Both the position numbers and the translations under genes were made by a program. Source: Mobula hypostoma (Eukaryota). From it: a DNA stretch of 64,000 bases. The first letter of the stretch is position 1; the number at the start of each line of letters is the position of its first letter. The notes below the pieces were generated by a model. It was not told the origin of the DNA, did not search any database, and saw only the letters and a program-made list of their open reading frames with translations. Shown piece after piece: positions 25,433 through 48,984 of this stretch. The stretch lies in NCBI RefSeq assembly GCF_963921235.1, contig NC_086123.1, forward strand, positions 31,000,001 through 31,064,000, given 5' to 3'.

Positions 25433-25439
25433 TGACCTC

Positions 25440-25823
25440 ATGGTGCTGTTGGACAGGGATCTGCAGAATTTAGATCCAGCTATGATGAGAGTCTACATGG
25501 CAATGTAGTTCCAAGTCAGGATGGTGTTTGGCTTCAAAGGGAACCTGCATTTGGTGGGGTTCCCACATGCCTGCAGCCTTTATCCTTCTTGATGTTCGAA
25601 TTTGTGGGTTTGACAGATGCTATCAGAGCAGCCAGGACAAAAAAATACTGCAGTGCAGTTTGTAAATGGTACATAGTGGGGCTACTATGCGTGGATAATG
25701 GAAGGAATCAATGTTTGGTGTGTTTGAGGAACCAATCAGTCTTCTTTTAACCTGGACGATCATGGGCTTCTTGAGAATTGCTGGTTTTGCACTCATCCAG
25801 TTAAGCAGAGAGTATTCCATCAC
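25440..25823 (-). mobile_element. Old degenerate LINE RT C-terminal fragment
   Basis: ORF 25623-25823 MEYS...W...NIDSFHYPR.VAPLCTIYKLHC resembles a CR1/L2-group C-terminus. Confidence 0.5.
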
Positions 25824-28729
25824 ATGAGTGGTGGTAAAATTCTTCTGAGGTGTATATATTTCAATGCTAGGAGTATTGCGGGGAAGGCAGATGAATTGAG
25901 GGCGTGGATTGACACGTGGAATTATGATGTTATAGCAATTAGTGAAACTTGGCTACAGGAGGGGCAGGACTGGCAGCTTAATATTCCAGGGTTCAGATGT
26001 TTCAGATGTGATCGAGGCAGAGGAATGAAAGGTGGGGGAGTAGCATTGCTTGTTAGGGAAAATATTACAGCAGTGCTCAGGCAGGACAGATTAGAGGGCT
26101 TGTCTACTGAGTCCTTATGGGTGGAGCTGAGAAACAGGAAAGGTATGGCCACATTAGTGGGATTGTATTACAGACCACCCAATAGTCAACGAGACTTGGA
26201 AGAGCAAATCTGCAAAGAGATAGCAGGCAACTGCAGGAAACATAAAGTTGTGGTGGTAGGGGATTTTAATTTTCCATACATTGATTGGGACTCCCATACT
26301 GTTAGGGGTCCAGATGGTTTAGAGTTTGTAAAATGTGTTCAGGAAAGTTTTCTAAATCAGTATATAGAGGGACCAACTAGAGGGGATGCAATATTGGATC
26401 TCCTGTTAGGAAACGAATTAGGGCAAGTGACAGAAGTCTGTGTAGGGGAGCACTTTGGTTCCAGTGATCATAACACCATTAGTTTCAATTTGATCATGGG
26501 CAAGGATAGATCTGGTCCTAGGGTTGAGGTTCTGAACTGGAAGAAGGCCAAATTTGAAGAAATGAGAAAGGATCTAAAAAGCGTGGATTGGGACAGGTTG
26601 TTCTCTGGCAAAGATGTGATTGGTAGGTGGGAAGCCTTCAAAGGGGAAATTTTGAGAGTGCAGAGTTTGTATGTTCCTGTCAGGATTAAAGGCAAATTGA
26701 ATAGAAATAAGGAACCTTGGTTCTCAAGGGATATTGCAACTCTGATAAAGAAGAAGAGGGAGTTGTATGAAATGTATAGGAAACAGGGAGTAAATCAGGT
26801 GCTTGAGGAGTATAAGAAGTGTAAGAAAATACTTAAGAAAGAAATCAGGAGGGCTAAAAGAAGACATGAGGTTGCCTTGGCAGTCAAAGTGAAGGATAAT
26901 CCAAAGAGCTTTTACAAGTATATTAAGAGCAAAAGGATTGTAAGGGATAAAATTGGTCCTCTTGAAGATCAGAGTGGTCAGCTTTGTGCGGAACCAAAGG
27001 AAATGGGGGAGATCTTAAATAGGTTTTTTGCATCTGTATTTACTAAGGAAGCTGGCATGAAATCTATGGAATTGAGGGAATCAAGTAGTGAGACCATGGA
27101 AAGTGTACAGATGAAAAAGGAGGAGGTGCTTGCTGTCTTGAGGAAAATTAAAGTGGATAAATCCCCAGGACCTGACAGGGTGTTCCCTCGGACCTTGAAG
27201 GAGACTAGTGTTGAAATTGCGGGGGCCCTGGCAGAAATATTTAAAATGTCGCTGTCTACGGGTGAAGTGCCGGAGGATTGGAGAGTGGCTCATGTTGTTC
27301 CGTTGTTTAAAAAAGGATCGAAAAGTAATCCGGGAAATTATAGGCCGGTGAGTTTAACGTCAGTAGTAGGTAAATTATTGGAGGGAGTACTAAGAGACAG
27401 AATCTACAAGCATCTGGATAGACAGGGGCTTATTAGGGAGAGTCAACATGGCTTTGTGCGTGGTAGGTCATGTTTGACCAATCTGTTGGAGTTTTTCGAG
27501 GAGGTTACCAGGAAAGTGGATGAAGGGAAGGCAGTGGATATTGTCTACATGGACTTCAGTAAGGCCTTTGACAAGGTCCCGCATGAGAGGTTAGTTAGGA
27601 AAATTCAGTCGCTAGGTATACATGGAGAGGTGGTAAATTGGATTAGACATTGGCTCGATGGAAGAAGCCAGAGAGTGGTGGTAGAGAATTGCTTCTCCGA
27701 GTGGAGGCCTGTGACTAGTGGTGTGCCACAGGGATCAGTGCTGGGTCCGTTGTTATTTGTCATCTATATCAATGATCTGGATGATAATGTGGTAAATTGG
27801 ATCAGCAAGTTTGCTGATGATACAAAGATTGGAGGTGCAGTAGACAGTGAGGAAGGTTTTCAGAGCCTGCAGAGGGACTTGGACCAGCTGGAAAAATGGG
27901 CTGAAAAATGGCAGATGGAGTTTAATACTGACAAGTGTGAGGTATTGCACGTTGGAAGGACAAACCAAGGTAGAACATACAGGGTTAATGGTAAGGCACT
28001 GAGTAGTGCAGTGGAACAGCGGGATCTGGGAATACAGATACCAGATTCTCTAAAAGTGTCATCACAGGTAGATAGGGTCGTAAAGAGAGCTTTTGGTACA
28101 TTGGCTTTTATTAATCGAAGTATTGAGTATAAGAGCTGGAATGTTATGATGAGGTTGTATAAGTCATTGGTGAGGCCAAATCTGGAGTATTGTGTTCAGT
28201 TTTGGTCACCAAATTACAGGAAGGATATAAATAAGGTTGAAAGAGTGCAGAGAAGGTTTACAAGGATGTTGCCGGGACTTGAGAAACTCAGTTACAGAGA
28301 AAGATTGAATAGGTTAGGACTTTATTCCCTGGAGCGTAGAAGAATGAGGGGAGATTTGATAGAGGTATATAAAATTATGATGGGTATAGATAGAGTGAAT
28401 GCAAGCAGGCTTTTTCCACTGAGGCAAGAGGAGAAAAAAACCAGAGGACATGGATTAAGGGTGAGGAGGGAAAAGTTTAAAGGGAACATTAGGTGGGGCT
28501 TCTTCACACAGAGAGCGGTGGGAGTATGGAATGAGCTGCCAGACGAGGTGGTAAATGCGGGTTCTTTTGTAACATTTAAGAATAAATTGGACAGATACAT
28601 GGATGGGAGGTGTATGGAGGGATATGGTCCGTGTGCAGGTCAGTGGAACTAGGCAGAAAATGGTTCGGCACAGCCAAGAAGGGCCAGAAGGCCTGTTTCT
28701 GTGCTCTAGTTTCTATGGTTTCTATGGTT
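25824..28729 (+). mobile_element. CR1 LINE with uninterrupted ORF2 (942 aa, APE endonuclease + RT; CDS 25824-28652), no ORF1
   Basis: YFNARS, ISETWL, VGDFNFP, SDHN (APE); NYRPVSL, YMDFSKAFD, FADD (RT); (TTTCTATGG)n tail. Confidence 0.95.
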
Positions 28730-29667: not shown

Positions 29668-30135
29668 TCAGCCTCCACGTAGCCGGAGCAGCAGAGAGAT
29701 GGTGGTTAGTGGTCTGATGTTGTAGTCGGAGAGCAATCGCCCATCCTCCAACTGTTTGCCCTCGTAAACCAGGCGCTGCTGGTCGGGTCTGACCCCCTCC
29801 TGCCGATGGACCCGCTCTTTAAACTTCTGCACGGACTCAGAGGGCATCACGTCGTACGTCGAGGTTTTCCCCTTGTCATTCAGGAGAAATATCTGCATGG
29901 ATTCCTCTTTCCTGACCAGCAACATGACGGTGGGGCTGGGGTTGAGGTTGTAGTAGCTCAGACTTCTGTCGTCCTGCATCTCCACGCTTTGGCCATTTTG
30001 CACCATCAGACGCTGTTGGGAAATGGGCACGTTGGTCTTTTCCTGGATTTTCATCTTGAGTGTCGACACTCGAATGGAAGCGTCGACATCAAGTTCGAAA
30101 CCATCGCCGGTGATAAACCTCACCTGAAGTCTCAT
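29668..30135 (-). CDS. isg15: ISG15-like protein, copy 3 (155 aa), nearest to OASL
   Basis: Tandem UBL, LRLRGG-stop; acceptor cctttctccacag, exon starts 30147. Confidence 0.9.
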
Positions 30136-30794
30136 CTTGTCAAATCGCTGTGGAGAAAGGAGAAATGATTAGAGAGTTTTTACATCAGCAGGGCATGAAC
30201 TATGAGGTATTAATATGGCATTGCCTATAATATCAACATAATTAGACTATTTACTAAGAGCTGTAGACAAACGGGAAAAGACAGACCCCTCTTTCCCAGC
30301 AGTTCTAAATGTGAGACAGGAATTTTGAGCCGCAATACTGACAATTTAAGGGGGAGGGACTGCGTGAGCCGGTGAACTTAAACATTTTTGAATGTAATCC
30401 GATCAGCGGCAAACAAATGTGTAAGTGACATTTGTAAATGCACATGTGTAAATGTGCAATTTGTTTAGATTTCTAAGCCAGGGCCATTCCAATCGCCGCT
30501 TAATAGGAAAAAAATCACTTTTGTCATATCGCTTTAATGGTGTACCCCGCATTCGGACTTGTTGCATCACCGTCTGATATGGAGGGACCACGACAGAGGG
30601 TCAGAAAAAGCTGCGGAGGGAGGTAAACTCATCCAGCTCCATCATGGGCATCAACAGAGTGTATCTTCAAAAGGTGATGACTGAAGGAGAAGGCATCGAT
30701 CAGTATGGGCCTGCCGGTCATGCCCGCTTCTCATTGCTACCATCAGCGAGGAGTCTGAAGACTCACGCTCAGCGCTTTAGGAACAGATGAACTA

Positions 30795-30967
30795 NNNNNN
30801 NNNNNNNNNNNNNNNNNNNNNNNNNNNNNNNNNNNNNNNNNNNNNNNNNNNNNNNNNNNNNNNNNNNNNNNNNNNNNNNNNNNNNNNNNNNNNNNNNNNN
30901 NNNNNNNNNNNNNNNNNNNNNNNNNNNNNNNNNNNNNNNNNNNNNNNNNNNNNNNNNNNNNNNNNNN
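30795..30967. other. Assembly gap (N run) at the position of the intronic inverted microsatellite
   Basis: Flanks match those of 8729-8800 and 18294-18352. Confidence 0.95.
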
Positions 30968-31769
30968 GTGAGTGTGCTATTATAGTTTATATTATATGCT
31001 CTGTACTGCACTGTGCTGCCGCCACAAGCTGCCAAGTTTATCGATTTAAGTTAGTGGTGATCACCCCAATTCTGATTCTAAATCGATTCTGCTGCGAATA
31101 AACTCCATTTGACTTTCAACCAAACATTCACCCCCCCCCCGCTCTCCTGCACAGAAAGTGGTCACTTCCGACCCAGACTTCCCGATGCACTGAATTCACA
31201 CGCAAATTATTGTCATGACATGAGCGAAGATTTGATGCACCATTTTAACAAGACCGTCACTCTACATCAGCCGATTAACGGGTTTCACCGAATCGTGAGC
31301 CGATCAATCTGAGAAGCAGGAGTGGCCATTCGGCCTGCACCTCTATTCAATGATATCCCCGATGATCTTTTACCTCGCCGCTAGTTGACAACAATTTGTC
31401 GCGTATCTATTGCCACTTTCTGTAAAGTTAGTTTTCTACTAACTTGTTCTCGCCCCGCGTTTTGTCAGCGGTAGAGACTACATTTCCTGCCCAGTTCAGA
31501 GGATCTTAGTAATTTAAATTATATTGTCAATGTTGTAAACAGGTAGATAAAAATGAACTTTGAGATAATCAAATAAAGTCTTACAATTTTTGTCGACAGT
31601 GCAGGAAGTCAGGACGAATCTGAAGAAAATCTGATCCGCAGCTTTTTTTCTTTGCCCTTTATTCCGCACCGACTTTCAGCTCTGGTCCGGGTAAATCAAT
31701 AGAAATTCTCGGGCTGCTGCTGATCGGTATCCCCGCTCCTGCAACTCTGCGTCTCTCCGCCTCCCCCGG

Positions 31770-32180
31770 CTCGCTTTATCTTCTGCTCCCGTTTCTGAAC
31801 GTCACCGCGCCGCTGGGCTGATCTCACGGCCCGCTGTCGCTGTGTTGATAAACAAACCAATCAGGTTCCAGCCGAAGTTTCGTTTCCGAAAAATTCCCCG
31901 CAGGGAATTGGAAATGCATGCGCCCTGTTACAGGGTTCAACGCTATCGGCTGTTTCACTTTCGGATTCCGGGAATGACACAACAGCTGGAAGCCGAGAAT
32001 GCGAAGCCGGATCTGAATTGAATATAACCTTAGACGTGTCATCTCTGAATACAATTATGTGGTTCATGAAGTGACTATGTAAGTGATAAAATGTAACACA
32101 AGAAAACAATTGTGCTCCATCCACAGCACCTCTATTTCCCCACCTCTGTCGCCCATCTCCCCGAGGACAGAACCGAAACA
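31770..32180 (-). promoter_or_regulatory. ISG15 copy 3 promoter: ISRE 31876-31887, kB-like 31888-31899, second full ISRE GAAAGTGAAAC (~31952-31962), extra IRF-type AACCGAAAC 32171-32179
   Basis: Motif matches. Confidence 0.8.
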
Positions 32181-32905
32181 GTGTGTACCCCCGGACCTTA
32201 ACTTTCACCCCATCTATGCTTTGTGACGTGCACCATTTCCAACGTGATCCCAGCACCTGCCGTACATCCCGCTCTCCACTTCTTTCTGCTTTCGGCATGG
32301 AGCCCTCTCTCTGAGACTCCCTGGTCCTCACATCTCTCTTCCTCCTGCCCACCTGCACTTTGTCCGGTAGGATGTGTTACAGCTGACCTCACCAGTGCTC
32401 ACCCAGCCCCCATCAACAACCAGGGCCTCATATAAGGAAACCCAAAGGAATTCTACAGATGCTGGGAATCTTGAAGAAAACACAAAAGATGTTGGGGGGG
32501 GGGGGGACTCAGGAGGTCAGGTAACATCAAAGGAGGGAAATGAACAGTCCATGATTCAGTCCAGATCCTTCATCAGAATTGCAAAGGAAGCCAGAATAAG
32601 AAGAGAGGGGTAGGAATGGGGAGGAGGGGGTACAAATTGGTGAGGGGGAGACTGGATGGGTGTGGGAGTGGGGATGATGTGAGAAGCTGGCAGGTGATAG
32701 CTGGAAGAAGTATGGGACTGAGGAAGAAGAAGAAGAAATCTGATAGGAAAGGACAGTGGACCACGGAAGTAGATGGGGAACCACAGAGGTGATGGGCAGG
32801 TCATGTGGGTGGGGGAGGAAAGTGGTGAGAGGATTACTAAACTGGGGAAAACAACTAAAGGGGGAGGGGAGAACCACAGAGGAGTGGGTACCTACCAGAA
32901 GTTAG

Positions 32906-34092
32906 TGTCACAATGGGGGCGTTGAGAACAGATCCAAATGTGAGACTCGCACACTGAAGTACAAGGAACAGGACTTGACTGGAGTAGGGACGTGACGGGA
33001 TATAGACCAGGAGCAGGGACAAGAACGCAGACTAGGGCCAGGACATGGACTAGACAGGGAACCCGGACAAGGAACTATGAACAAGGAGCCTGTGCTTGGA
33101 TTCCAAGCCAGAGACTGGACAAGGACCTAGAACCTGGGTCTTGCCTCGGGTTCGGTCCCCAGAACCAGGCAAGGACATGACATGGCTACAGGACAGGACG
33201 TGGCTGGGGTCTTGGCTCTTGAGTCTTGAGGCTAGAAGCTGGGGACTTAGAATGCGGAGGCTGATAACTCAGAGGCTGGAGCTCAGAGACAGACTGGGAA
33301 CTGTACATCAACCTAGAGCCAGGACTTATCCATCGAAAAGCCGGGACTCATCTTTAACATGACACTAACACGAGACTGGACAGTACATAGACATAGAGCC
33401 GGGACTCAACTTTATCTCCATACCAAGGTGGGACAGGTCCACTTGTTGGGTAATGGCAGAACAGCCGGACTTACCCAACAGAGGCGAGGACAAGACAAAA
33501 CAAGACAGGACCCCCCACAGGGCAACGGCAGAACAGCCTGACTTATCCCACGGAGGCAAGGACAAGACAGATCCCCCACAGGGCAACGGCAGAATGGCCT
33601 GACTTACCCCATAGAGGTGAGGACAAGAAGAGACAAACACCAAAGAACAACAGACAGTTTCTTCTCTGCATCGGGGTTGCTCCGAGTCACAGTTCAGCCA
33701 GCAACCTCAGCTGGCTATGGAAACAGCCAGATCCCTACCTAGCTCTGAGCGGCTGGCAGCCACTCAGCTGGCCCAGGAAACAGCCAAATCCATACCACAA
33801 AGACAGCTCCAACTGCCGACAGCAGGGCTCCATGAAGCGATGGTTCTCCAACATGGCCTAAAGGTGACAAGTGGCCGCTCTAGCCTTCCACCGGCAGGTT
33901 GCGCCCAGGAAATCATGACAAGGCAAACCAGCAGCTCACACCCAAGGCCTCTTATATTCCAAGCCCCAAGATGGGAATCAGGTACCTATGATTAACTCAA
34001 ACAAAACAAGGGACAGCTGGAAGACCCGGAATCCTGAGTCCATGGACCGGACTGTGAACCGGAAGGCAGTCTTCACGGACCGGACAATGACA
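32906..34092 (-). mobile_element. Solo LTR (TGTCA...TGACA) with 5-bp TSD GTTAG; internal ~60-bp tandem repeats at ~33450-33630
   Basis: GTTAG at 32901-32905 and 34093-34097; single GTTAG at the paralogous empty site ~13787; related copy at 56675. Confidence 0.85.
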
Positions 34093-36269
34093 GTTAGAGG
34101 TTAATGACTACTCAGACAGAGTATGAGGTGTTCCTCCTCCAACTTGCATTTGGCTTCATCGTGGCAGTGTCCTGAGCAGCTCTTCCAGGTGAGCCGGGCA
34201 TCCACATGCATCTCCTCTGGTCTTGTTTATTGTATCAGGTGCTTCCGATATGACATCTTCTACATTGGTGAGACCAGTGCAAACTAGGCCTTCCTCTCTT
34301 ACCAGATTCCTTCATCTGCAGCCCTTTATCGCCTCCAGCCGTCACCTCCCAGCTTCTGTCCCCATGTCCACTCCTCCTTCTTCCATCTGCCTATCATCCC
34401 TTCTCACCTGGATCCAGCTTTTGGTCCACCCCTTCCCCTCACTTCTTAATATTGGCCATCTCTGTTCTGTCTTTCAGTCCAGATAAAGAATGTCACATTG
34501 ACTGTCCATTTCCATCCATAGATGCTGCCTGACATACTGAGTTCCTCCAGTATCTCTTCTGGAGCTTCACATTTATCAAGTTCTGAGTTGATTGAGAAGC
34601 TTTCATGTCGGAAATTCCTGGGACCCCGCACCAGCGGCACAAGTGATTTGGAGTGAGACTTACCTCACTTTCCCACTCTTTGGTGCTCCTGTGGTCAAGA
34701 TAAATGGAATTACTCCATCTATCTTCCCTTCTGCTTATTCCTCTGAAACACTGAACAGTTGTAAATGTTCATTTCCGGGACTTGTTCACTTTGTCAGATT
34801 GTACTTGTTCTGTTGTGAAAAAGTCACCAGAGAGACACTAAAGTTTGTGGATATAGAAGTGTTTTATTCAACAAAAACCAGCAGCAGGCATCATATTGAG
34901 ACACTTTTGTAAGAGGAGGCCTGCTCAACCCAATATTACATGACATTTTATCTGCTGAAGATCAAAGGTATCAGCACAGCAATTCTACCGTTTCAATGTA
35001 TGTAAAATACTTCCTTTTGAATTACACATAGTTATCACACGCCATCTCCTTTGCACCCACACTCCAGACACCCAAAATGAATATTAACGTCCACTGACTC
35101 TCGGCTGCATTCATGCATATGCAGGCTTCTGAGGTCTGATTGTTCTGAGCTGTGCCTTAAATTCAATCTACAATCCACATTCAAGTCTGAAGATTGTTTG
35201 CTGGTGAAATTAATATTTGCCAACTCCAGAATACACCCTAACAGTACTCCTTTAGAGAGTCATTGCAATTCAATGCAGAAATGGCCACCATGTCCATGCC
35301 AACCACTAAGCTCCGATTTTATACCCATCCTGCACTCATCCCTTGTTTATTTCATAGGACCTCGTGTGGGAGACCCATATCTCATTCATTAACAAAAAGT
35401 CTTGGCAGAGATTGTTGGTAAGATGTTCTTACCCAAAATCTATTGGTGTAATTCTTCATAGAGAGCATCCTCACATCAGCCATTACTATCTGGTTTGGTG
35501 CAATACACAAAAACTACAGCCAACTGTCAGGTCAGCAGAAAACATTATTGGCTGCAGTCTACCAACAATGCAGGGGTCGTATGTGTCCAGAACAAAGAAA
35601 CAGGCGGAAAAAGTCATTGTGGTTACTTCCCACCCAGCAAACGTCCTTCATTTGTTTGCTTCGACTATGAGAAGATTGGAGTGCAAGAGAAAAGGTGTCT
35701 TACTGATTTATGAAGTACCATTATTACACCACAGCTGGAGTATTATGTAGACGATTGTCTCTTTAGGTAAGAAAGAATATACACGCCATTGAGGTAATGT
35801 GGTCAAGATCAACTTGACTACCTTCTGGGATAGTGAGCTTGCCTATGAGTATTTATAGGCAAGAAATGAAGGCCCAGAGATGGTCTGTCCTGAGGTTGGA
35901 GGCCAGTCTGACTGTGTGAGTGGGTGGGAAAGGGGACTGTTTTGCTTTTATTGTTGCTGTTGCTACTTGTACTGTGCAGATGAACATTGTGGGCATGTTA
36001 CGTTGGTGATTTGTGGGCTGCCCCCAGCACATCCTTGGGTTATGTTGCATGATAACACAAATGACACAGTTCACTGTATGTTCCAAGTACATGTGATGAA
36101 TAAATTTGAGTCTGAAGTCTGCAATCTCCAGACATCAGCAGAATGAAAAGTGACCTCATTTAAAGTTACCAATTTCTACTGGCCTTGGCAGTTTGTATGC
36201 AGAAGGGATGTTTCCTCTGGCCTAGGGCTCTAGAATCTGGGGTCACTGTCTCAGAACAAAGTCACTTGT

Positions 36270-36860
36270 GAAGATGCCATCCTCTTCTCTCAATTCCAAC
36301 ATCTCTGCCCACATCTGCTCTCAGGATGAGGCTTTTCATTCCAAAAAAAGTGAGATGTCTTCCTTCTTTAAAGAAAGGGACTTCCCTTGCTCCACCATCA
36401 ATGCTGCCCTCACATGCATCTCTTCCATTTCATGCATGTCTGCCTTCACCCATCCCCCTGCCACCCCATCAGGGATAGGGTTCCTCTTGTCCTCACCTAC
36501 CACCCCATCAGCCTCTGCATCCAGCACAAAATTTTCCATAATTTCCGCCATCTCTAACAGGATTCCACCACCAAACACATCTTTCCCTCACCTCCACTTT
36601 CCACTTTCTGCAGTAATCACTCCCTATGCAATTCCCTTGCCCATTCACACTCTCCACTGATGTCCCTCCTTGTACTTGCCTTTGCAAGTGGAACAAGTGC
36701 TACACCTGCTCTAACGAGGCACTATTCATGGCCCTTTCCAGGTGAGGCGACACATCACCTTGACTCTGTTGGGGTCATCTACTGTATCTGGTGCTCCCGG
36801 AGTGGCCTCCTGTACATCAGTGAGACCGCTTCACCGAGCGTCTGTCCTGATGAAGAGTCT
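36270..36860 (+). mobile_element. Penelope-like element fragment (RT C-terminus / GIY-YIG), degenerate
   Basis: ICSQDEAFH..SEMSSFFKERDFP..TINAAL; VIYCIWCSRSGLLYISET; truncated CTGATGA hammerhead-like end. Confidence 0.7.
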
Positions 36861-38019
36861 CAGCAATTTTGGACCCCACCACATCTTCATCTTGGAGTGT
36901 GACCATCCCACTTCCCCAGAAGGTGGTGAATGGCGACGACAGAATCACAAGTGGGAATGGCTCCCCACACCGCCCCACTGCAGCAAAATGATCCCCCAGG
37001 CTGTTGTTCTCAAAACAGGGGAGCACTTTGTGTGGAGATGAACCCCCTGCTCCTTGACTGAAACAGGTAGAAGACGCAGGTGGTGGCAGTGAGAGTAGGA
37101 AGTACTAGTGGTGGGGACTTGCTAGTGAACAGGATATTCAGCTCCTTTTTCTGGTTCCCAGCAGATTGTGCAGAAGGATACAAAGTCAGCATCAAATAGA
37201 GAGCGGTGATGTGGACCAGGTAATGAGAGGGTTTAGGGTTTGGGCACTTGTAGGGAAAGAAGTGAAAATGACAGGGGATCAGAGTGAAGCAGAGGGTGAG
37301 GGATGTGACAGGCATGCCACTGTGAGAAGGGTTTGTGGGTGGTAGAGGAAGGGAAACCCTATCCTTTGAAGAAGGGAGATATCTCTGATGCTCTGCAGAT
37401 CTGTTCCTAGGATGAGGTTTTCCTTTCCAGAACATCGGAGATGTCTCCCCACCTCTACTCAACACAGGGATTGGACTCTCCATTATCCTATCTCCTCCAA
37501 GCTTCTCACTTCATTCCCCTTTCCCCTCACCTTGTAGCTTGCATTCCTTCCCCTCCCCCAATTTATTATTCTGCATTCTTCCCATTTCTTTCCGGTCTGG
37601 GCCCCAAACATCGGCTGATTATTCCTCTCCATAGCTGCTGCCTGACCTGCTGAGTTCCTCCAGTATTTTCCCGTGTGTTGCTCTGGATTTCCAGCATCTG
37701 TAGACTCTCTTGTGTTTAGACTGAGCCTCAGCAATGTGAAGGTTGATTTTAATTTCATACGCACAGGTGCAATGAAAAACTTGCGCAGGCACAGAGTACA
37801 GACAGGGACAGGAGAGGAACAGTGAAGAGGACAGGGCCCCTGAACCGTGGGTGGAGGGATTCAGACTCTGACATACAAGTAAGTTCATTTTGAGATGCGA
37901 GACGTGTTTTAGAGGAGGGCAGTTTGCCCCGTGGGTTGGAATGTTATTCCGGGTGTCCGAATAACGAGAGCGAGAGTCTGAAGGAAAGATGCTTTTAAAA
38001 AGTAAAAACAAGTGATCAG

Positions 38020-38308
38020 CGCACAGTGAGTCAGCATTGATGGGGCCAGGAAAAGCGATGGAAAGAAAAGGAACCGAACTACGGCGTTATCCACTGAAAT
38101 CGAAATGGGCGCGGTGCTGCCATTAATCAGCTCGAGCGATGACAGCCAACCAGAGCAGTGCCGTGCATAAAATGTAATGTACCGGCAAATTTCACTATAT
38201 TAGAATAATTTGAAGGCGGGGCTGGCGACCGGTTTATAAACAGCTTCTCTGCGGTGGAAGCAAGAAGTTTGGACGCCGCCTGTGAGGAAGAACGTACGCT
38301 CAGTAACG
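38020..38308 (+). promoter_or_regulatory. OASL promoter: AP-1/ARE GTGAGTCAGCA (38026-38036), GAAA-rich tract, ISRE-like GAAATCGAAA (38096-38105), GC box (~38216), TATAAA (38235-38240)
   Basis: Motif matches in a CpG-rich block; TATA ~70 nt upstream of the ATG. Confidence 0.75.
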
Positions 38309-38479
38309 ATGGAGCTACACGAAATAGACCCCGAGAAACTGGACGACTTCATTAAAAAGAACTTGGAGCCAAGCGGATTTAATGTCGAGGTGAGAGAGGC
38401 CATGAACAGGATCTGCGAGTTTTTAAAAAATCAGTGTTTCACCAAACAACCCGACGTTAAAGTGATCAAAGCCGTTAAG
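38309..38479 (+). CDS. oasl: OASL exon 1 ([21 protein letters not shown]...VIKAVK)
   Basis: OAS N-terminal LD.FI...L.P motif; donor AAG|GTGAGT. Confidence 0.88.
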
Positions 38480-41400
38480 GTGAGTCGGTTAGTTTTTAAA
38501 TGAAAAATACTTACCGAGTGGTACTTACTATAATTCAGTTTTTAAAACAGCAAGCACTTCTTTTCCTCGTGAATGAAGATGCTGATAAATCAATCTACTC
38601 ATAAAAATAAGAGATAAGCTTAAGAGTAACAAGACAAACATTATATAGGATAAACTGTAATCGAATATACCAAATTATATAAATGTAATCAACATCAAGA
38701 GACATTAAGTAATCCTATATAGTAAGAAAGCCAAATTTAAAAAGTAGTTTTTTGGAAGTGTTTTGAAACTAGTCTGGCGTATCTCAGTCATTAAGAGTTT
38801 TTTTTTGCAAGATCGCATCACCAGTTCTTGTATGCTTGACTCTAGGAACTTTAAGCAAACCAGTATTCACGGATTTAAGATTACGATTAGGGACGTAAGG
38901 GATATATTGAGGAGCTAGATTATTTAGAGTCTTGTATACAGTTAAAATTATTTTTACGTCACCATGTGCTAGACTGGGGCTCATACAATTTAAAGTTTTA
39001 CACAGGGTACATTTAAGTAAAGCCAGGCTTGCTGACATATATCCCGGGACAGACGCAGGCTGTGACAGGTGTTTCTTCTCTCCGGCTGGTTTAGTGTATG
39101 CAGTTTGGTCTTGCCCTCGGCTTGATGGCTATGGGACACTGGTTTTTAAATTATCAGAGAGGTTTTGGGGGTGACACTGAGATCTTGCCCGCTTATAGCT
39201 GAATTTGGTGTGGCAGATGATGTTTTGGTTTTAAATGCAAGCCAGTGAGATATCATTGCATTTACATCGCTATTGGCCCGTAGGAAAATCTTGCTGGTCT
39301 GGAAATATGCCACTCCCCCATCTGCTGCTGCTTGGTTAGAGAGCGTAATGTTTTTTCCTAAAATTAGAAAAGATTAAATTCACTTTGAGAGGGTCTGTGA
39401 AAAAGTTCTATTCGAAATGGGGACCTTTCTTGTCATATTTTGGGAGTCTTAAGGAATTACCTACGAGTTGAGGGCATTTGATTGTACTTGGGAAGCTGCC
39501 TCCCTTTTAACACGCATATGGTTTACCTCACAGGGTGGTTGACGAATTGTAATATGAGTGTATTTTGGATCATCTGACATGTTGTGGATGTGTGTGGGCC
39601 TTCGTCTTGAAGTGGTGTGGGAGTATGGCTGTGAAATGTCCGCACTTGTATTTCTGAATTGTTGTATTGTAAATACATTAGCTGCCATGGTATGTTCGAG
39701 GAGGGCGGGTGAGGGGAGGTTTGTTTAGGGGTAAGATATATTTTTAAAATTATTTAAAAATTAATCCTATAGGACACGGGCAGCCAGTGTAATGATGGCA
39801 AAACTGGTGAATAGTTCTCATTTTTTTAAAAAACTAAGGGCGAAGCTGTCAACAGTTTTGTAATGCAGTCAGTGTGGTTCGGTCCAAAGGTCTTTGTTAA
39901 ATTGTGTACATTCCCAGGTCCAATGGGGGATCTTATCAACTTGCCACAGCTTTCTCCCTCTTGGGCAGCATTTCAGGACAAGTCCGACTTGTTTCTACCA
40001 CAGGTCTGAGTGCTCTGTGGTGGATGAAGAGTTCTGAGTGGAAAGCACGGATCTACACTACCGGCAAGAAAATTAATTTCAGGGCAGAATATGGCGACAT
40101 GTATATGTACTTTGATAATAAATTTGTCTTGAGCTTTGGAAGTTCCACTGGGAGTAAGTCTGGAGTTCTCGCTTTTTTAAAAAAACTTTCGGCCTCGCTG
40201 CTTGAAGTAGGCGCGGTGTATGGCGAGTAATTTACGAGGTGGTCCCCTGATCCTTGTGTGAAGCTTCTGTCAGCACCCAGTGCATGACCCTGAGGCGCTT
40301 AGCAGTGAGTGAAGGGGAAGTGGTCTCCAGCTGAGTGGCCACTTTGAGAAGGTCTTCCTTGAGGTGGAAGTGTTGCTGGGCGGTTAACGTGTGCGCGATG
40401 ATGAACACCGGGCTTCTGTAAGAAGGGCGAGCCGCGGTGAGGCAAGGCCGGAGAAGAATTTTCTCTTTTCCAAGTCTGCTGTTTATTAAAGGGGCAGGAC
40501 AGCAGCCGGTGAAGTGATGGAAGCCGGACAGATCAGGGAGGGTTCAACGGGAATGACCTGACACTCGCAACATCAACAGAAGGAGAGGTGAAGTCCTGCA
40601 AGGTCAATTCAGAAATTTAGGCGGCAAGTCCTGAAAAAAACAGTACCTTAGGGTTGTAATTTCAGGATTACTCCCAGAGCCCTGGGCTAAGAAGGCAACA
40701 AATCGGAAGTTAATAGAATTAAACCTGTGGCTCCAGGGCAGCTGGGAACTGTAGATGAAAGATGGGTTACACGGGGGCAAGTAAGTAATCCCGCCGCCCC
40801 CCCCGTTCAAGAATCTGATGGTTGAGGGGTAATAACTTCCTGAACCTGGTGGTGTGAGTCCTGAGGCTCCTGTACCTTCTTCCTGATGGCAGCAGCGAGA
40901 GGAGAGCATGACCTGGGTGGTGGGGGTCCCTGATGATGGATGCTGCTTTCCTGTGACAATGCTCCATGCAGATGTGCTCAATGGTGGGGAGGACGTGACC
41001 TGTGTCTTCAGGGCGTAACAAGGCATACATTCGGCTTCAACAAATTGTTGTTTGTCAGTGAATATGGGCTTAGAATGCATGGAATTATGCTAAATTAAAA
41101 AAAAATAGTGAAATAGAAAAAGATTAGGGCGTTAATTTTGGTGGCAGTGTTCTGGATAAGGTGGAGGTATATACAAAGGTTACCTCACCATTTCCTTGGG
41201 AAGACTGTATGTGTGTCCTCCAGTGAGGACAAGGCTGGATGGTAATAGCGATGACCAACTGTCAAATGTCTTCTATGAACGTAGTGCATGTCTACTTGGG
41301 GATATCCTTAAAGAGTGTTTGTTCAACTGCCTCCCTTCTGGATTTTCAGGAAAAGGGGAAAGTTCTGAACTAAAGGGACAGAACAAAGCACCACCATGTT

Positions 41401-44400
41401 AATCCTGCACACAAAACATATGCTGGCTATGTTAAACCTGATTTCAATTCTAATTCTGGAAATGTTTGAAAAGAACGATAATTAGATGTGTAACTTTTTT
41501 TGTTGACAGGGTGGATCATCAGGAAAAGGAACAGCTTTAAAAAATAGCTCAGATGCAGATCTCGTCGTCTTTCTCAGTTGCTTCAAAAGTTTCCAGCACC
41601 AGAGAGACACCAGGCATGAAATTCTTGAGGGAATTCGGGCAATGTTGGATAAATATTCTCAAAGCCTTGCATATCAAGTCGATAATATCAATATCAACAT
41701 CATAAAGCAAAGTACCACATCGCCAAAATCTCTGAGTTTTGAGCTGCAATCAAAGAAGAGTTCAGAGACCGTGTCCTTTGATGTTCTGCCAACCTATGAT
41801 GCATTAAGTAAGAATTAATAGCAATGATACGTTGACTATAATTAATAGTAATGTTACATCTCAAATGTAATTTTAATTCTTCTGTCACTGCTTCTGTGGA
41901 TAGGCGGTTTGAAAGGAGCTTGTCTAATTTGCTCTCTTCAGAGTCTTATTCTGAGTCAAGTTGTTGCTGCTGTTGTTAAGGAAGAAAATGCGCTCAGTGA
42001 CCATTTTATTCGGTACTTCCTGTAATCTTGGCCTTCTGCTGCTGTAGCCCATCCACCTCAAGGTTCGAAGTGTTGTACATTCACAAATGCGCTCCTGCAT
42101 GGCTCTGCTGTAACACAAGGCTATTGAATTACTGTCACCTTCCTGTCGGCTTGAACCAGTCTGGCCATTTTCCTCTGACGTCTCACTAACAAGGAGAGTC
42201 TAGCCACTGAACTGCACTCACTGGATGTCTTGTTTTTTATTCGTCTATTCTAAGCCATCTCTAGTGACTGTTGCACATAAGAATCCCAGGAGATCGGCAT
42301 TTTCTGAGATACTCCAACCACCCTGTCTGGCACCAACAATCATGCCACAGTCAGTCACTTAGAATGCATTTCTTCCCTATTCGGATGTTTGATCCAAACA
42401 ACAACTGAACCTGTTGACCAGGACTGCATGCTTTTGTACATTGAATTGCTGCTATGTGATTGGTTGATTAGACATTTGCATTAACGAGCAGGTGTACCTA
42501 ATAAAGTGGCCACTGAATGTAGATTACAGTTCACTTTTTGTCTGTATATGGCACATAAGATTCTTTCATAGGAGAAATAACAAGGAATATTAACCCTAAA
42601 TCTTACTGCTATTGCTTTAACGCTGACATTAAACCAGTTTGATAACAAAATGAATTCCATGGGAAGTCTTGGGTAGCAAGTCTAAAACTTGCTGTTAAAA
42701 GATAATATCTGCCTTTTTCCTTTCCTTTCATAAGAAAGGGATTCATTTTCTTGGCCACTCTTACCAAGATGCAAAAAGCATTAGTCATTATCTTGGGTTA
42801 AATTTACAGGTGATTCTTAGCAGAAATAGAGTTATGGAACACTACAGCATAGAAACAGGCCCTTCAGCCCACCTAGTGCATGCTGAACTATGATTTTGCC
42901 CAGTCCCATCAACTTGTACCTGGACCACAGCCCTCCATACCACACCCATCTATGTATCTATCCGAATTTCTTTTAAATGTTGAAATTGAACCCGCAGCCA
43001 TCACTCTGCTGGCAGCTCATTCCACACACTCACAACCATCTTGTGTGAAGAAGTTCCCCCAAATGTTTTTAAACCAGGGGTTCCCACCCTGGGGTCCACA
43101 GGTTCCTTGGTTAATGGTGCATGGCATAAAAAAGGATGGGGACCCCTGCCTTTAAAATAATCACTTCTCAACCTTAAACCATAACCTCTATTTCTAGTGT
43201 CACCCAACCTCAGTGGGGAAAAAAGCCTGCTTGCTTTTACCCCATCTATAACGGTCATAATTTTGAATACCTCTATCAAATCTCCCCTCATTCTCCTTTG
43301 TTATGCAAACTTCAGCAAACTCTTTCTGGGAACCTTTGGGAAGGTGGAAAATATCCTGAGATTAAATAAACTGGAGTGAATCCAATAGAATGGCCTATTT
43401 GGTCTTGGAGGTGATACTTGACCAGATATTAATCAATAGTCTTTTGACCATGTTCTCATTCATCATTTTATTTCTTGCAGCACCACAGTGTGATAGAAGC
43501 AAAGCACATCTCGAACTAACCCAATTTGCAAACGAGAACGAGATGACAGATGGAGAATTTTCTGCTTGTTTTACGGAACTTCAGAGATCATTTGTGAAGC
43601 GGCAATTTCCAAAGGTTAAAGACTTGATTCGCCTGCTGAAATATTGGTACAAGGAGGTGAGTGACGGAAGAAAGTGATAATTGTTAATCATTGAAAGCCT
43701 ATGGAAGGGTTGTTGTATCAAACCTAAAATGCTATCTTGCTTTGATATCTCAGATTACACCTTCTTCCTCTTTGGCATTTCCTCAGGATCATGGAGTAAG
43801 TGTGTCCCTAGTCCAATGCATCAGGTTCTCAATACAGTCTTGAATATCCCTTCTCCAATTTTGAATGGTTATGGACCGAAGACCCCCAGAATCTTTGGGG
43901 ATGTTGCTATTTGCTTTTGTCTCCCAAGGACCTGCCCAATAGCCAATGCAGGAAACCCATGAGATACCATTGTATGTTTGTGGGCAGAACGCAGCTCTCC
44001 AATGAAATCACTGACTTCCATGGTACAATTTTGGATTGAGTCCCTAGTTTCCAGAGTATACTCCCAGCATGCAACCTGCTTCAGGCTAGAAATGGTCACA
44101 AAGACATTTCTAATTGAATTCAAAATTTATTTTTGATTCAATTTCTCATTCGGTTGAGATTTAACCTAAGGATGTGATGGTCCTCTCTGCTTGACTGATG
44201 GCACCACAGAACTATCAGAGATTGGACAACATGTACTCCCCAACTGACTGACAATATACAGATCATTTCGCCATTTCCATCATTGCCCTGTGTGAGATCT
44301 TGCTTTATACACAAATGGGGTACTTAAATCCAAGTCTTTTCCCTATATATTCTTCTGGTACTCTCAGAACATTCATAAGGCCAAGAAAACAGGAGGAGGA

Positions 44401-47400
44401 GTCATCCCATGGGACTTTGACTTCAGGCTGTGATCATGGCTGACCTGACCTAGATCTCAGTGCAGATTCAGCAATTTGTGTGATGGAGATGTTGAGATAG
44501 GGGCCACTTGGGAATGATCCCATGTAGCCATTGGTCTAGGTGTGGTCTTGGCATGTAACCTCAGGGAGGCTGTTTCATCAGAGAAAATAATGAAGATTCG
44601 AAGTATAGAACCAAAACAGAGGGTAATGAGTGTGCTTAACATCACATTTGCTTATCCGTGATTGTCAATAATTCTCCCTAGTATGTCAAACCACGGAAAT
44701 CAGAGCTGAGAAATGGAGCACGACTGCCTGCAAAGTATGCCTTAGAGTTATTGACCATTTATGCCTGGGAGGAAGGTAATCATCAAGAGAGATTTGACAC
44801 GGCTGAAGGGTTCCGCACAGTCTTGGAACTGATCTGCAGATATCAGGATCTATGTATCTACTGGACTAACTACTATGATGTCAATAATGCAGTTCTTGCA
44901 GAGTTCATAATCAAGAAACTCAGCAACAGAAGGTAAGATTCCCAACCACACTTCAAACTATGCCAAATAATGGGACCCTTTGTTTTTAAATTGGGTTCAC
45001 CTTCTGGATTCTTGTACACACAGGTCCAATAGAAAGTATTACATGGCATCACATTCTTAAAACATAAGACCACAAGGTATAGGAGCAGAATTAGGCCATT
45101 TCGCCCATCAGGTCTGCTGTCATTTCATCATGGCTGTTTCAATTTTCCCCTTAGCCCCAATCTGCTGCCTTCACCTGTATCACTTCATGCACTGATCAGT
45201 CAAGAATCTATCAATCTCTGCCTTAAATATACATAAAGGCTTGGCCTCCACAGTTGGCTGTGGCAAAGAATTCCACAGATTCACCACCCTTTGGCTAAAG
45301 AAATTCCTCCTTATTTCCAATCTAAAAGGACACCCTTCTATTCTGGGGCTGTGTCCTCTGGTGTTAAACTCTCCCACCATACCACTCTATCATGGCCTTT
45401 CACCATTCATTATGTTTCATTGAGGTCACCCTCATCCTTCTGAATTCTAGTGAGTGCAGGCACAGAGCCATCAAATGCTCTTCATATGACAAACCATTCA
45501 ATCCTGGAATCATTTTCGTGAACCTCCTTTGAACCCTCTACAGTTCCGAAGGTAACATCTGAAAGTATCTCTTAATGTTCCTCATTTCCTAACTAACCAC
45601 TGTTGCCTACCTTACTCAGATGATTGACTTCAGAGTCCTCAGCCTTATTTACAATTCTCTACCTCACCACAGTCTACCCTCTGTCACCTCACCATTTTTT
45701 GCCTCCTCAAGCTCTTTTAGCCAGTGTTTCTATTTCACTTTTTGGCCATTTTCCATCAGTAGTAGTATTTTCTGTCAGCTTTCTCTCATCTTATGGAGTT
45801 TTCCGTAGAGTACTTCCTCATTTCAAAGTTTGACTCAAAATCTCAGAATACATTCCTCACATTTTGTGGATGTCCATTTCTGTTTCTGTTGTGATGGCAG
45901 ATGGGGAATGTGTAGATCTGTACGCATTGTGACATGTATTCAGTGATACATCTGTTTGAATTATTGTTACCATGTTTGGGAATACTGTGATGATCAATGA
46001 CAAATTCTGAGGCTGCGGAGGAATGGAGAGTTGAGGCCACAGACACTACCATTGTAGCCGACTAGAGCTGGGCAGGAAAGTTGATTCCTTTTTCTGCTCA
46101 TTGTGCTGCCTGTGTATGGGATGGGGAATGGGTGGCTTTGATGTTCTGATGTTCCTGTCATTCATTCATTTGTTTTTTTTAATTTTGTGGATGTCTGTGA
46201 AGAGTAAGAATTTCGGGTTGTATACTGTATACTTTCTCTGATAATAAATTGAACACTTTTGTCATAAACTGATGGAGGATTAATGCAAATTGATCACAAA
46301 GATGGCCATTATACGCAGTGCGTGTACTGTCAGCAAATAGCTCAAAGTTCAATCTTGTCATTGGAATGCTTTTATTTTTCAGACCGATCATTCTTGATCC
46401 AGCTGATCCAACTGGAAACGTGGCTTCATCAGATGGTTGGAATGTGATGAAAGATGAGGCCAGGAAATGGCTAAGCATGCCTTGTGTCTCTAATGTTGAG
46501 GCATGGGATGTCCAGGTAAGAGTTTGAATAATTGATTTTCAGATATAAGGGAGTGGAGATACATTATTCCCCATTTTCTTTCACCCTGCCAGTGTCTGGC
46601 TACTGATAAACATCCCAGACTGCCTCTGCCCAGGGGATATGCTACAGTCTGTCGCAGGCCTTCTGATTTTGCACTGCTTGAATTGTCCTCTATGGTAATT
46701 TGCAGTCTCTGGTGCTGAAAACCAGCCACCTTACCTCACCTTGTTGCTCATTATTGGGTGGAGTTTCGAGCTAAGCAAGGTCCTGGTGAACATGGCACAT
46801 GTATTACGTGCAGATTTGAATGCCTTGTGACATGGTTCTATTTCATTATCTAGGTTAATCATCCTAAATGTTTAAAGCCTAACCATTTTAAAATACAGTT
46901 GATTACTAGGTAATACACAACCGAAGCAGGGGGTGACCCAGCTTTTGGGGTCTTGAACTGTGGATTTATACAACATGTTTAATATTGGAAAAAACTTATT
47001 GAGGTGGCAATCTTATTGAAACCCATCAAATATTGAAAGGGCTAGACCGTGGACGTGGAGTGGATGCTTCCTACAGTGGGGACTCTAGGACTAGAGGCCA
47101 AGCCTCAGAATAGAGGGACATCCATTCAGAATGGCGATGAGAAGGAACTTCTGTAACCAGAGGCTGGTGAATGTGTGGAATTCATTGTCACAGACGGATG
47201 TGGAGGCCAAATCACTTAGTGTATTAAAAGAGGAGGTTGATTGGTTCTTGATTAGTCAGGGCATCAAAAGTTAAGAGGAGAAAGCAGAAGAATGGGGTTG
47301 AGAGGGAAAATATATCAGCCATGATAGAATGGTGAAGCAAACTCAATGGGCTGAATGGCCTAATTCTGTTGCTATGTCTTATGGATTTAAGTTTTCAGTG

Positions 47401-48984
47401 ATGTGTTTGGGAAAACTGATCGGTGGTAGTATCTGTGGCTGTGGAGGAATGGGCAGTTGAGGTTATAGACATAACTATTTTACCCAGATCAAGCCAAAAA
47501 AGTTCAGTTCTGGTTGATTTCTTTTTCTCCTACTCCTTGTGTTCGATTCACTAAGTTGCTTGACGACAACTGGTAGAAATGATTATAGAATTCAACAGAA
47601 AAACTGAGTTACAACAAGTGAAATGAACAAGTGTCTGACCTGTAACTTGACACTCATCACACCAAAGTGGGTTCCTTTTTTGATTGTATCTTCAGCTGTG
47701 TAACATTAATAAGATGAGGTTTAATATCACAGGCACATGTCATGAAATTTATTATCTTTGCAGCAATGCAGTACATAATAGAGGAAAAAATGACCTACAT
47801 TATGTGTGTGTGTATACTATATCTTAAATAGTTGAATTAAATAAAGTAGTGCAAAAAAGAAAGTTGTGGTGTAGTGTTTGTGGCTTCAATGTCCATTCAG
47901 ACAGGAAGAAGTTGTTGGGTGTGACCTTCAGGCTTCTGTACCTCCACCCTGATGGTAGCAATGACACGAGGGCATGTCCTGGGGAGGGGGGTCTTTAATG
48001 AAGGACACCACCCTTCTGAGGCATCGTTCCTTGAAGATGTCCTGGATACTACGAAGGCTAGTGCCCATGATGGAGCGGACTAATTTTACAACTCTGTGCT
48101 GGTTACCTAATCCTGTGCAGTAGCTCCACTCCCCCACACCACCCATACCAGATGGTGATGCAGTCAGTTAGAAAGCTCTGTCGAAATTTGCAGGAGTTTT
48201 TGGTGACAGACCGAATAGTGGAGAATGGAGCTCCAAATGAACAGCAAATCAGAGTTGTCTGCTGATTGAGACCATGACAGCCTACGCCACACTGTTGGAG
48301 CTCGCAATCCCATGGCACGCATCCACCCTCACTTCAGCCCTTGCAATTTATTCCACAGAGTGCTCTTGGTGCAAGTGTAGTTTTGCACACTAACGACACC
48401 CATAACTACCCTTCAAGTTGTCGTTTCCCATCTCCCTCTTTTGTTTTCTGTCGCCTCTGAAGTATAAAAGGAACATATTTTACTTCTGCCCATTTTTGTT
48501 TTGTTTACCTCAGTCAGTGAAGACATTCCGAGTCACGGTGACGGCCCTGAATGGTAATTCGTTACAGCAAAATGCCAGCATTTACAACAAGGTCTCTGAG
48601 ATCAAACGTGGCATCCAGGAAGAGTGGAACATCCCAGCTCTTCAGCAATGCCTGCAATTCAAAGACACCATTCTGGATGATAGGATCACCTTGCTGGTTG
48701 CCAAGATCTTCTTTGATGCAGAAATCCAGCTGCTCACCCTGAGTGTAATGGAGATATTTGTCGGGATAGACGGGCGTAACCGGACGATCCAGGTTTTGCC
48801 AAGTGACAAGGTTTCAAGTTTAAAAGCTAAAATTGAATCCCTGGAGCGAATCCGGCGAAGCCAGTACTACTTAACCTTTCAATCAACGCCGCTTGAAGAT
48901 GAACGTACACTGCAATCTTACGGCATTACGCAATATTCTACCATCCTTGTCAACCTGAGAGTGCGTGGTGGCAGCGAGATTTAA
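38309..48984 (+). CDS. oasl: 2'-5'-oligoadenylate synthetase-like protein with two C-terminal UBLs; join(38309..38479,41510..41807,43481..43656,44682..44932,46383..46515,48514..48984) = 1500 nt, 499 aa
   Basis: All five introns GT-AG with matching phases (0,1,0,2,0); OAS motifs [63 protein letters not shown]; last exon is a tandem UBL. Confidence 0.92.
38690..38935 (-). mobile_element. L2-type LINE 3' fragment in OASL intron 1
   Basis: [22 protein letters not shown]....LLKVPRV. Confidence 0.6.
38935..39770 (+). mobile_element. L1/Tx1-type LINE 3' fragment (Cys-rich ORF2 C-terminus)
   Basis: [14 protein letters not shown]......CDRC......L.Y.VWSCP.L. Confidence 0.7.
41510..41807 (+). CDS. oasl: OASL exon 2: NTase core ([16 protein letters not shown]); missed by the ORF track
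   Basis: Hand translation; acceptor ttgacag, donor A|GTAAGA. Confidence 0.92.
41991..42519. mobile_element. Tc1/mariner-type MITE with TIRs in OASL intron 2
   Basis: CGCTCAGTGACCATTTTATTCGGTAC ... GTACCTAATAAAGTGGCCACTGAATG, followed by TA. Confidence 0.75.
42830..43280 (-). mobile_element. CR1 3' fragment
   Basis: [12 protein letters not shown]...WNELP. Confidence 0.75.
43481..43656 (+). CDS. oasl: OASL exon 3 ([12 protein letters not shown]...[15 protein letters not shown])
   Basis: Acceptor ttgcag, donor GAG|GTGAGT. Confidence 0.92.
44682..44932 (+). CDS. oasl: OASL exon 4 ([16 protein letters not shown]...[11 protein letters not shown]...LCIYWTNYY)
   Basis: Acceptor ccctag, donor AG|GTAAGA. 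Confidence 0.92.
45060..45545 (-). mobile_element. CR1 3' fragment
   Basis: [31 protein letters not shown]. Confidence 0.75.
46383..46515 (+). CDS. oasl: OASL exon 5 ([14 protein letters not shown]...WDVQ)
   Basis: Acceptor tttcag, donor CAG|GTAAGA. Confidence 0.92.
48514..48984 (+). CDS. oasl: OASL exon 6: tandem UBL ending LRVRGG-SEI
   Basis: Polypyrimidine tract + cctcag acceptor, phase 0; aligns to ISG15 and ubiquitin. Confidence 0.9.
   Translation, partial: SVKTFRVTVTALNGNSLQQNASIYNKVSEIKRGIQEEWNIPALQQCLQFKDTILDDRITLLVAKIFFDAEIQLLTLSVMEIFVGIDGRNRTIQVLPSDKVSSLKAKIESLERIRRSQYYLTFQSTPLEDERTLQSYGITQYSTILVNLRVRGGSEI

Follow-up and report, generated by a model that had tools for sequence, protein, structure and literature searches.

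The question raised by this locus is whether ISG15 and OASL, two interferon effectors that each carry a pair of ubiquitin-like (UBL) domains, are neighbours in a cartilaginous fish, and if so what their proximity says about their origin and their regulation. In human, the two genes lie on different chromosomes and are unlinked. The window analysed here is a stretch of 64,000 nucleotides from the ray Mobula hypostoma (RefSeq assembly GCF_963921235.1, contig NC_086123.1, positions 31,000,001 to 31,064,000 of the forward strand), the DNA of which is vertebrate and rich in long interspersed nuclear elements (LINEs). A preliminary description of the window had reported an array of ISG15 copies on the minus strand, the third of which is directly head-to-head with an OASL gene on the plus strand, and had suggested that this is where the two effectors split and that they may be regulated as one module. 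It had also stated that teleosts lack OAS genes and that birds lack ISG15, both of which agree with the literature: OAS was lost in ray-finned fishes, as was RNase L (PMC10400998; 10.1101/693333), and ISG15 was lost in Archosauria (PMC5381560). The conclusion reached here, with a probability of roughly 85%, is that the region is a genuine and evolutionarily conserved interferon-effector cluster of cartilaginous fishes.

The window contains three intact open reading frames (ORFs) of 155 codons, all on the minus strand, and each encoding two ubiquitin-family domains as identified by Pfam (coordinates are collected in Table 1). Judging from their fused domains, their ending and the match of the N domain, these are ISG15-type genes. 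The protein aligns to solved ISG15 structures over its full length and in a single stretch (E 1e-27), and when the N domain is compared by itself, ISG15 N domains reach 47.7 bits and mono-ubiquitin at most 41. The search restricted to the N domain returned eight candidates, all of them ray proteins, an earlier search having been dominated by polyubiquitins. The closest relatives are 155-residue proteins of other rays, skates, sharks and one chimaera, publicly named "polyubiquitin-like" or "uncharacterized", and an exact match to the copy 3 protein is on record for Mobula hypostoma (GCA_963921235.1). The ending RL(R/C)GG is present in all 18 cartilaginous-fish sequences examined (the three window copies and 15 relatives) and is LRLRGG in 17 of them, one Mobula birostris paralogue ending in LRLCGG. 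The motif stands at the very end in 17 of the 18, with two residues following it in Rhincodon, and the length is 155 residues in 16 of the 18, the exceptions being Hemitrygon (165) and Rhincodon (157). In the alignment, the linker between the two UBL domains has no GG cleavage site, and one loop of the N domain is three residues longer than in ubiquitin or mammalian ISG15.

These genes invite comparison with ISG15 of bony vertebrates, with which they share two fused UBL domains in about 155 residues, the C-terminal LRLRGG, the full-length match to ISG15 structures, promoter motifs of the interferon-stimulated response element (ISRE) type, and a single coding exon, with an intron that is placed at the start codon or shortly before it. 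They differ in the three extra loop residues, in adjoining OASL, and in forming a tandem array of at least three copies, whereas ISG15 is a single isolated gene in zebrafish and human (10.1101/693333). A further difference is that the ray protein stops exactly at GG, with no cleavable extension, and it would thus be ready for conjugation without processing. The tandem units are about 9.6-12.5 kb long and mutually 92-98% identical; because coding and flanking sequences are alike in identity (about 97-98%), the copies are either recent duplicates or have been homogenised. According to the source annotation, more copies follow past the left end of the window, some of them fused into models of 561 and 365 residues.

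A Heptranchias protein with OAS and UBL domains was found by tblastn to be collinear with six plus-strand segments, and these are the six exons of the OASL gene. Every junction follows the GT-AG rule, and joining the exons yields an uninterrupted frame of 499 codons. Pfam identifies NTP_transf_2, OAS1_C and two ubiquitin domains, the protein matches structures of OAS1, OAS2, OAS3 and OASL, and the tail encoded by exon 6 is 55-81% identical to the tails of other cartilaginous-fish OASL proteins. In exon 2, the GS loop, the DAD motif and the third Asp (within FDVLP) align to the corresponding motifs of human OAS1, and for this exon human OASL scores far below OAS1 and OAS2. The retained catalytic residues indicate that the product is probably an active OAS, which would be expected to make 2'-5' oligoadenylate on double-stranded RNA. 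The Mobula gene fits the NTase-OAS1_C-UBL arrangement, which has been described as an ancient and active architecture, and in yeast, OASa of Callorhinchus reportedly cooperates with RNase L (PMC10400998). It resembles the known OASL/OASa.U genes in its domains (NTP_transf_2, OAS1_C and two UBLs) and in having six exons with the tail on the last (PMC10400998, PMC6307210). It differs from human OASL in keeping the catalytic Asp triad and the GS loop, like bird OASL and mouse Oasl2 (PMC6307210), and it is further set apart by a tail that still ends in an RGG motif plus three residues and by annotation, its relatives being called "OAS1-like" or merged into multi-unit models. The other cartilaginous-fish, coelacanth and bird tails examined have LRLRGG plus a few residues, whereas the Mobula tail has RVRGG followed by only three; with such a precursor-like ending kept on an enzyme, it may be asked if the tail ever becomes exposed or conjugated. 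A relaxed tblastn search found no second OASL copy downstream of 48984 in the window, and the source annotation merges the window OASL with later copies into a model of 1479 residues.

The gene models confirm that copy 3 and OASL are head-to-head neighbours, with 8.2 kb between the divergent start codons at 30135 and 38309. The distance of about 6.2 kb given previously is that between the ISRE-like motifs at 31953-31962 (minus strand) and 38096-38105 (plus strand). The intervening DNA had been described as transposable element (TE) debris only, and this is what is found: LINE debris and remnants of the repeat unit, with no Pfam match for the intergenic ORFs, no Rfam match, and no gene between copy 3 and OASL in the public annotation of the source assembly, where the upstream neighbour of copy 3 is an opposite-strand model with OAS and UBL domains. 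TE sequence aside, nothing in the spacer except the ISG15 promoter block aligns to Heptranchias and Rhinoraja. Two collinear 120-bp spacer matches to Heptranchias were considered as regulatory elements and rejected, being degenerate LINE reverse-transcriptase tails.

The preliminary description had allowed that the linkage might be limited to this species or assembly, and independent assemblies of three further species show the same pair. In Heptranchias perlo (record L003), at least three OASL genes are in tandem, and a full-length ISG15-type ORF, 71% identical, is head-to-head with the first of them at a distance of 6.1 kb, with a second ISG15-type copy about 38 kb further out (ATG to stop, in record coordinates). 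In Callorhinchus milii (L007), the head-to-head partner of the first OASL is a 155-residue gene, 57% identical, at 5.5 kb, and further OASL copies follow the first; in Rhinoraja longicauda (L008) the spacing of the head-to-head pair is 9.8 kb. The fifth species in which the association is conserved is Cetorhinus maximus, where the extent of a merged OASL model takes in a 155-residue gene on the opposite strand; this is evidence of close linkage only. In Hemitrygon the two families are on one chromosome. Because the pair is present in Mobula, Rhinoraja and Heptranchias and also in the holocephalan Callorhinchus, the arrangement predates the split between chimaeras and elasmobranchs, and the ISG15-OASL linkage is ancestral at least for Chondrichthyes. 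A keyword search of the literature, with most subscription journals outside its reach, found no report of this linkage, and a word search of papers on OAS evolution found neither ISG15 nor synteny in their text. The neighbourhood is therefore real, conserved and apparently unreported.

Transcription and splicing of the ISG15-type gene are documented in the little skate by two RNA-derived contigs, with a non-coding first exon, a 2.5-kb intron, and a second exon that begins 12 nt 5' of the ATG. The splice acceptor is at this same position in all Mobula copies, in Heptranchias and in Rhinoraja, and abuts the ATG in Callorhinchus. The first exon and intron of copy 3 are predicted on this pattern, and the region of the predicted exon is conserved with Heptranchias and Rhinoraja. 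The block upstream of it, consisting of GAAAGTGAA(A/T), GGAAACGAAACT, a CCAAT box and a TATA-like ATAAAG, is near-invariant among the three Mobula units. The ISRE-type and interferon regulatory factor (IRF)-type motifs of these promoters are conserved in Mobula, Leucoraja, Rhinoraja and Callorhinchus: the copy 3 motifs and their flanking bases are found in Leucoraja (L004, 7115 and 7160), where both are immediately upstream of the first exon supported by RNA, and also in Rhinoraja (L008, 2800 and 2757), and the Callorhinchus gene has a canonical GGAAATGGAAACTGAAAGTGA in the same orientation. On the other side of the spacer, the decamer GAAATCGAAA of the OASL promoter also occurs 162-179 bp upstream of the ATG in two Heptranchias OASL copies. 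ISRE-type motifs in both promoters, as originally claimed, are thus present and conserved across species. It is worth adding that CGGAAACGAAACT, upstream of the second Callorhinchus OASL copy (L007, 18166-18178), exactly matches the proximal motif found in the ISG15 promoters of batoids; so short a motif could reflect either common descent or convergence on one factor site.

The cluster thus consists of two tandem arrays transcribed in opposite directions, one of ISG15-type genes and one of OAS genes, of which only the first OAS gene is in the window, and the OAS genes retain the ancient NTase-OAS1_C-di-UBL architecture. Each gene would be controlled from its own TATA-type promoter with ISRE/IRF-type motifs, and because such motifs are present in each promoter, interferon signalling should switch on both arrays together, via IRF and ISGF3-type factors. 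The head-to-head arrangement, older than the divergence of chimaeras and elasmobranchs, has outlasted repeated tandem duplication as well as LINE insertion.

The stronger suggestion, that ISG15 and OASL constitute one co-regulated module, goes beyond what is seen in Mobula, where the predicted start sites are about 6.5 kb apart and each gene has ISRE motifs of its own. Taking Mobula, Heptranchias and Rhinoraja together, each gene again has its own ISRE-type motifs. With about 4.6 to 7 kb between the predicted start sites, the pair has no shared bidirectional promoter in these species; such promoters have divergent starts within about 1 kb and shared elements, which is not what is seen in Mobula. 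In Callorhinchus, the sole ISRE cluster between the two genes is about 1.1 kb from the annotated OASL start, and a shared regulatory element is possible there. Interferon co-induction of both genes would be expected in any case.

What the linkage means beyond this is less certain. Just short of an even chance is given to the view that it is specific to the lineage, the two genes having met once in the stem of the cartilaginous fishes, or having stayed together by chance in slowly rearranging genomes, in which case their adjacency says nothing about origin or regulation. All the positive cases of synteny are cartilaginous fishes, the spacers vary from 5.5 to 9.8 kb and contain no conserved non-TE sequence except the promoter of each gene, and the elasmobranch genes each have their own ISRE motifs. 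However, chimaeras and elasmobranchs have both retained the same divergent orientation since they split, even though genes on either side were repeatedly duplicated in tandem, which suggests constraint, and there are hints of proximity outside the cartilaginous fishes, in an ISG15-type tail on a coelacanth OASL and a ubiquitin-family gene in a caecilian, both described below.

These hints bear on where the OASL tail came from. The antiviral OAS lineage of vertebrates (OASa) arose through the gain of UBL domains prior to the ancestor of jawed vertebrates, the source of the domains being left unstated and no donor named (PMC10400998). A tentative proposal, less likely than not, is that a di-UBL unit was duplicated locally, one copy becoming the free ISG15 and the other being captured as the terminal exon of an OAS gene to give OASL, so that the linkage would be ancestral to jawed vertebrates. 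Circumstantially, both di-UBL units are single exons of near-equal size (468 and 471 bp), and the acceptor of OASL exon 6 is 12 nt before the residue aligned with the ISG15 Met, just as the elasmobranch ISG15 acceptor is 12 nt before the ATG; the chimaera acceptor abuts the ATG, so this match is not general. A single stretch covering both domains of the OASL tail aligns to ISG15 structures (63 bits), a match no poorer than that over the same span to a solved 160-residue 2'-5' oligoadenylate synthase chain (59 bits). Against this, the domains themselves lend no sequence support to the earlier idea of a locus where the two effectors split. Between the ISG15-type and OASL domains of cartilaginous fishes, identity is only 25% (N) and 40% (C); to ubiquitin it is higher for each, at 31-34% (N) and 45-56% (C). 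In neighbour-joining distance trees, which at about 76-155 columns are indicative only, the grouping of all N domains has 21% bootstrap, and the full-length tree is an unresolved three-way split between the ISG15-type proteins (85%), the OASL tails without coelacanth (79%) and di-ubiquitin. The pair is therefore not shown to mark the place where ISG15 and OASL arose.

The coelacanth Latimeria chalumnae (P0135 / P0243) provides a hint of exchange. In the tree, the tail of its OASL unit 1 falls with the ISG15-type genes (83% bootstrap). Its identity to them, 40% for the N domain and 63% for the C domain, exceeds that to ubiquitin, and it has the same three-residue loop insertion. Over the whole tail it is 49-51% identical to ray, shark and chimaera ISG15-type proteins, against 29-38% to their OASL tails. 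Unit 2 has a single UBL of OASL type, and has in common with tetrapod and cartilaginous-fish OASL proteins an OASL-type N domain with a GIF(F/Y) motif. The simplest reading suggests that the unit 1 tail is a later replacement by an ISG15-type unit in the coelacanth lineage, and such a swap would be easiest between neighbouring genes. In the caecilian Rhinatrema bivittatum (GCA_901001135.2), a merged OASL model of 165 kb encloses a separately called gene of about 2 kb for a 230-residue protein with a ubiquitin-family domain, which may be of ISG15 type. No ISG15-like gene was found within 10 kb on either side of Rhineura OASL or Microcaecilia OAS1, a weak negative given that intergenic distances may be larger, and the human genes are unlinked. 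The fullest form of the proposal, in which the divergent pair is ancestral to jawed vertebrates, an ISG15-type exon was the donor of the OASa tail, and the coelacanth tail is a second capture from the same neighbour, is likewise doubtful on present evidence.

Several points weigh against reading the locus as a cluster of ISG15-type and OAS genes under interferon control. Interferon induction in Mobula is a prediction from promoter motifs; the OASL motif GAAATCGAAAT is not a perfect ISRE, and GAAANNGAAA is only mildly enriched in the window (8 observed against 4.7 expected). An assembly gap separates the copy 3 coding sequence (CDS) from OASL. As to the identity of the 155-residue genes, the whole protein scores 159 bits to di-ubiquitin (two stretches summed) against 99 to mammalian ISG15, its C domain is 56% identical to ubiquitin, public annotation uses the name "polyubiquitin-like", and the ISG15-type genes in the trees were those of cartilaginous fishes, which bears on orthology. 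These last observations could be explained if the genes are not ISG15 orthologues but belong to a fused di-ubiquitin family specific to cartilaginous fishes. This is improbable in view of the missing internal GG, the constant length and ending, and the N domain that is nearer to ISG15 than to ubiquitin, together with the ISRE motifs in the promoter and the intron in the 5' untranslated region (UTR), RNA-supported in skate. ISG15 genes carry just such an intron immediately before the ATG.

The gap, of merely estimated length, is in a tandem repeat, where assemblers often fail, and could hide collapsed repeat copies. On its left side, collinearity with units 1 and 2 extends to 8708 and 18273, and on its right side it resumes at 8792 and 18347, units 1 and 2 having 73-83 bp where the window has 173 N. 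Since the gap is in a predicted 5'-UTR intron, which is non-coding, the copy 3 reading frame is unaffected. That it joins unrelated contigs, and that copy 3 and OASL are consequently not true neighbours, is very improbable, because both flanks match the same point of two paralogous units, because the remainder of the ISG15 intron, the first exon and the promoter (30968-31962) are on the OASL side and contiguous with OASL, and because the head-to-head pair is present in the assemblies of three other species, with close linkage in a fourth. A conserved interferon-effector cluster remains the best explanation of the locus.

Table 1 Features of the ISG15-OASL region of Mobula hypostoma, in window positions
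Feature	Positions	Strand	Basis and remarks
ISG15-type copy 1, coding exon	7578..8045	-	155-aa ORF; Pfam ubiquitin x2; LRLRGG-stop; 97-98% identical to other copies
ISRE-like motif GGAAACGAAACT, copy 1 promoter	9703..9714	-	same motif at homologous position in all three units and in skate
ISG15-type copy 2, coding exon	17142..17609	-	155-aa ORF; Pfam ubiquitin x2; LRLRGG-stop
ISRE-like motif GGAAACGAAACT, copy 2 promoter	19259..19270	-	motif comparison of the three units
Two adjacent LINE ORFs in unit 3	22986..28652		Pfam RVT_1, Exo_endo_phos
LINE ORF, 699-aa reverse transcriptase	22986-25085	-	beside the 942-aa ORF, in ISG15 unit 3
LINE ORF, 942-aa endonuclease and reverse transcriptase	25824-28652	+	uninterrupted; in ISG15 unit 3
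ISG15-type copy 3, exon 2	29668..30147	-	12 nt 5'-UTR and 155-aa CDS (29668-30135); acceptor AG 30149-30148
Copy 3, predicted 5'-UTR intron	30148..31584	-	donor GT 31584-31583; holds the assembly gap; predicted by analogy with the RNA-supported skate gene
Assembly gap, 173 N	30795..30967		inside predicted copy 3 intron; about 660 bp upstream of ATG
Copy 3, predicted non-coding exon 1	31585..31750	-	3' of TATA-like ATAAAG (31779-31774) and CCAAT box (31861-31857)
Copy 3 promoter elements	31876..31962	-	GGAAACGAAACT (31876-31887), GAAAGTGAAA (31953-31962)
Intergenic spacer	31963..38095		repeat-unit remnants, LINE debris (e.g. 35650-36270)
ISRE-like motif GAAATCGAAA	38096..38105	+	213 bp upstream of OASL ATG
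TATA box TTTATAAA of OASL	38233-38240	+	about 70 bp before ATG
OASL exon 1	38309..38479	+	ATG, 57 codons; tblastn with Heptranchias OASL; splice sites
OASL exon 2	41510..41807	+	NTP_transf_2 core, GS loop, three catalytic Asp; Pfam; alignment with human/pig OAS1, OAS2
OASL exon 3	43481..43656	+	OAS1_C; tblastn, Pfam, splice sites
OASL exon 4	44682..44932	+	OAS1_C; tblastn, Pfam, splice sites
OASL exon 5	46383..46515	+	end of OAS1_C; tblastn, Pfam, splice sites
OASL exon 6	48514..48984	+	entire di-UBL tail, one phase-0 exon; ends RVRGGSEI-stop

Some further features of the region are of interest in their own right. Unit 1 of the ISG15 array holds LINE copies related to those of unit 3. The element with the 942-residue ORF is full-length in unit 3 and 5'-truncated in unit 1, which largely accounts for the extra length of unit 3, and it looks recently active. 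The only two perfect ISREs in the window, GAAATCGAAACT at 58437-58448 and 59487-59498 on the plus strand, are inside a direct repeat of about 390 bp (58367-58754 and 59417-59801), and other GAAA-rich motifs lie next to them. They are not similar to the OASL promoter, and the window contains no OAS exon downstream of them; they could be TE-borne, or could be the promoter of an unannotated interferon-induced transcript. In Callorhinchus, the tail of the first OASL copy (L007, 14795-15225) matches in two reading frames, the annotated product is short (466 residues) and the second UBL appears disrupted, the next copy being complete. Merged annotations are found in Mobula, Cetorhinus, Callorhinchus, Heptranchias and Carcharodon, with OASL models of 1411-2277 residues and ISG15-type models of 237-561 residues.

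A known parallel is found in clusters of interferon-stimulated genes such as the mammalian OAS1-OAS2-OAS3 cluster, which likewise consists of tandem interferon effectors with ISRE promoters and birth-and-death evolution (PMC10400998). The ray cluster differs in that it joins two effector families, a modifier and a nucleotidyltransferase, which share only the di-UBL module, and in that their divergent orientation is fixed across Chondrichthyes.

The finding flags a systematic mis-annotation, in which ISG15 is named "polyubiquitin-like" and tandem ISG15 and OASL copies are merged into multi-unit models; tables of copy number and orthology drawn from such fused shark and ray annotations will be wrong. 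The pair could also serve, as a natural system, to study if two families of interferon effectors are regulated from one shared chromatin domain. Finally, ISG15 as the neighbour of OASL throughout cartilaginous-fish history provides a concrete hypothesis for the donor of the OASL UBL domains, which is testable by comparative genomics; if ISG15 was indeed the donor, and the coelacanth tail a recapture, then local exon exchange between ISG15 and OASL would have been recurrent.

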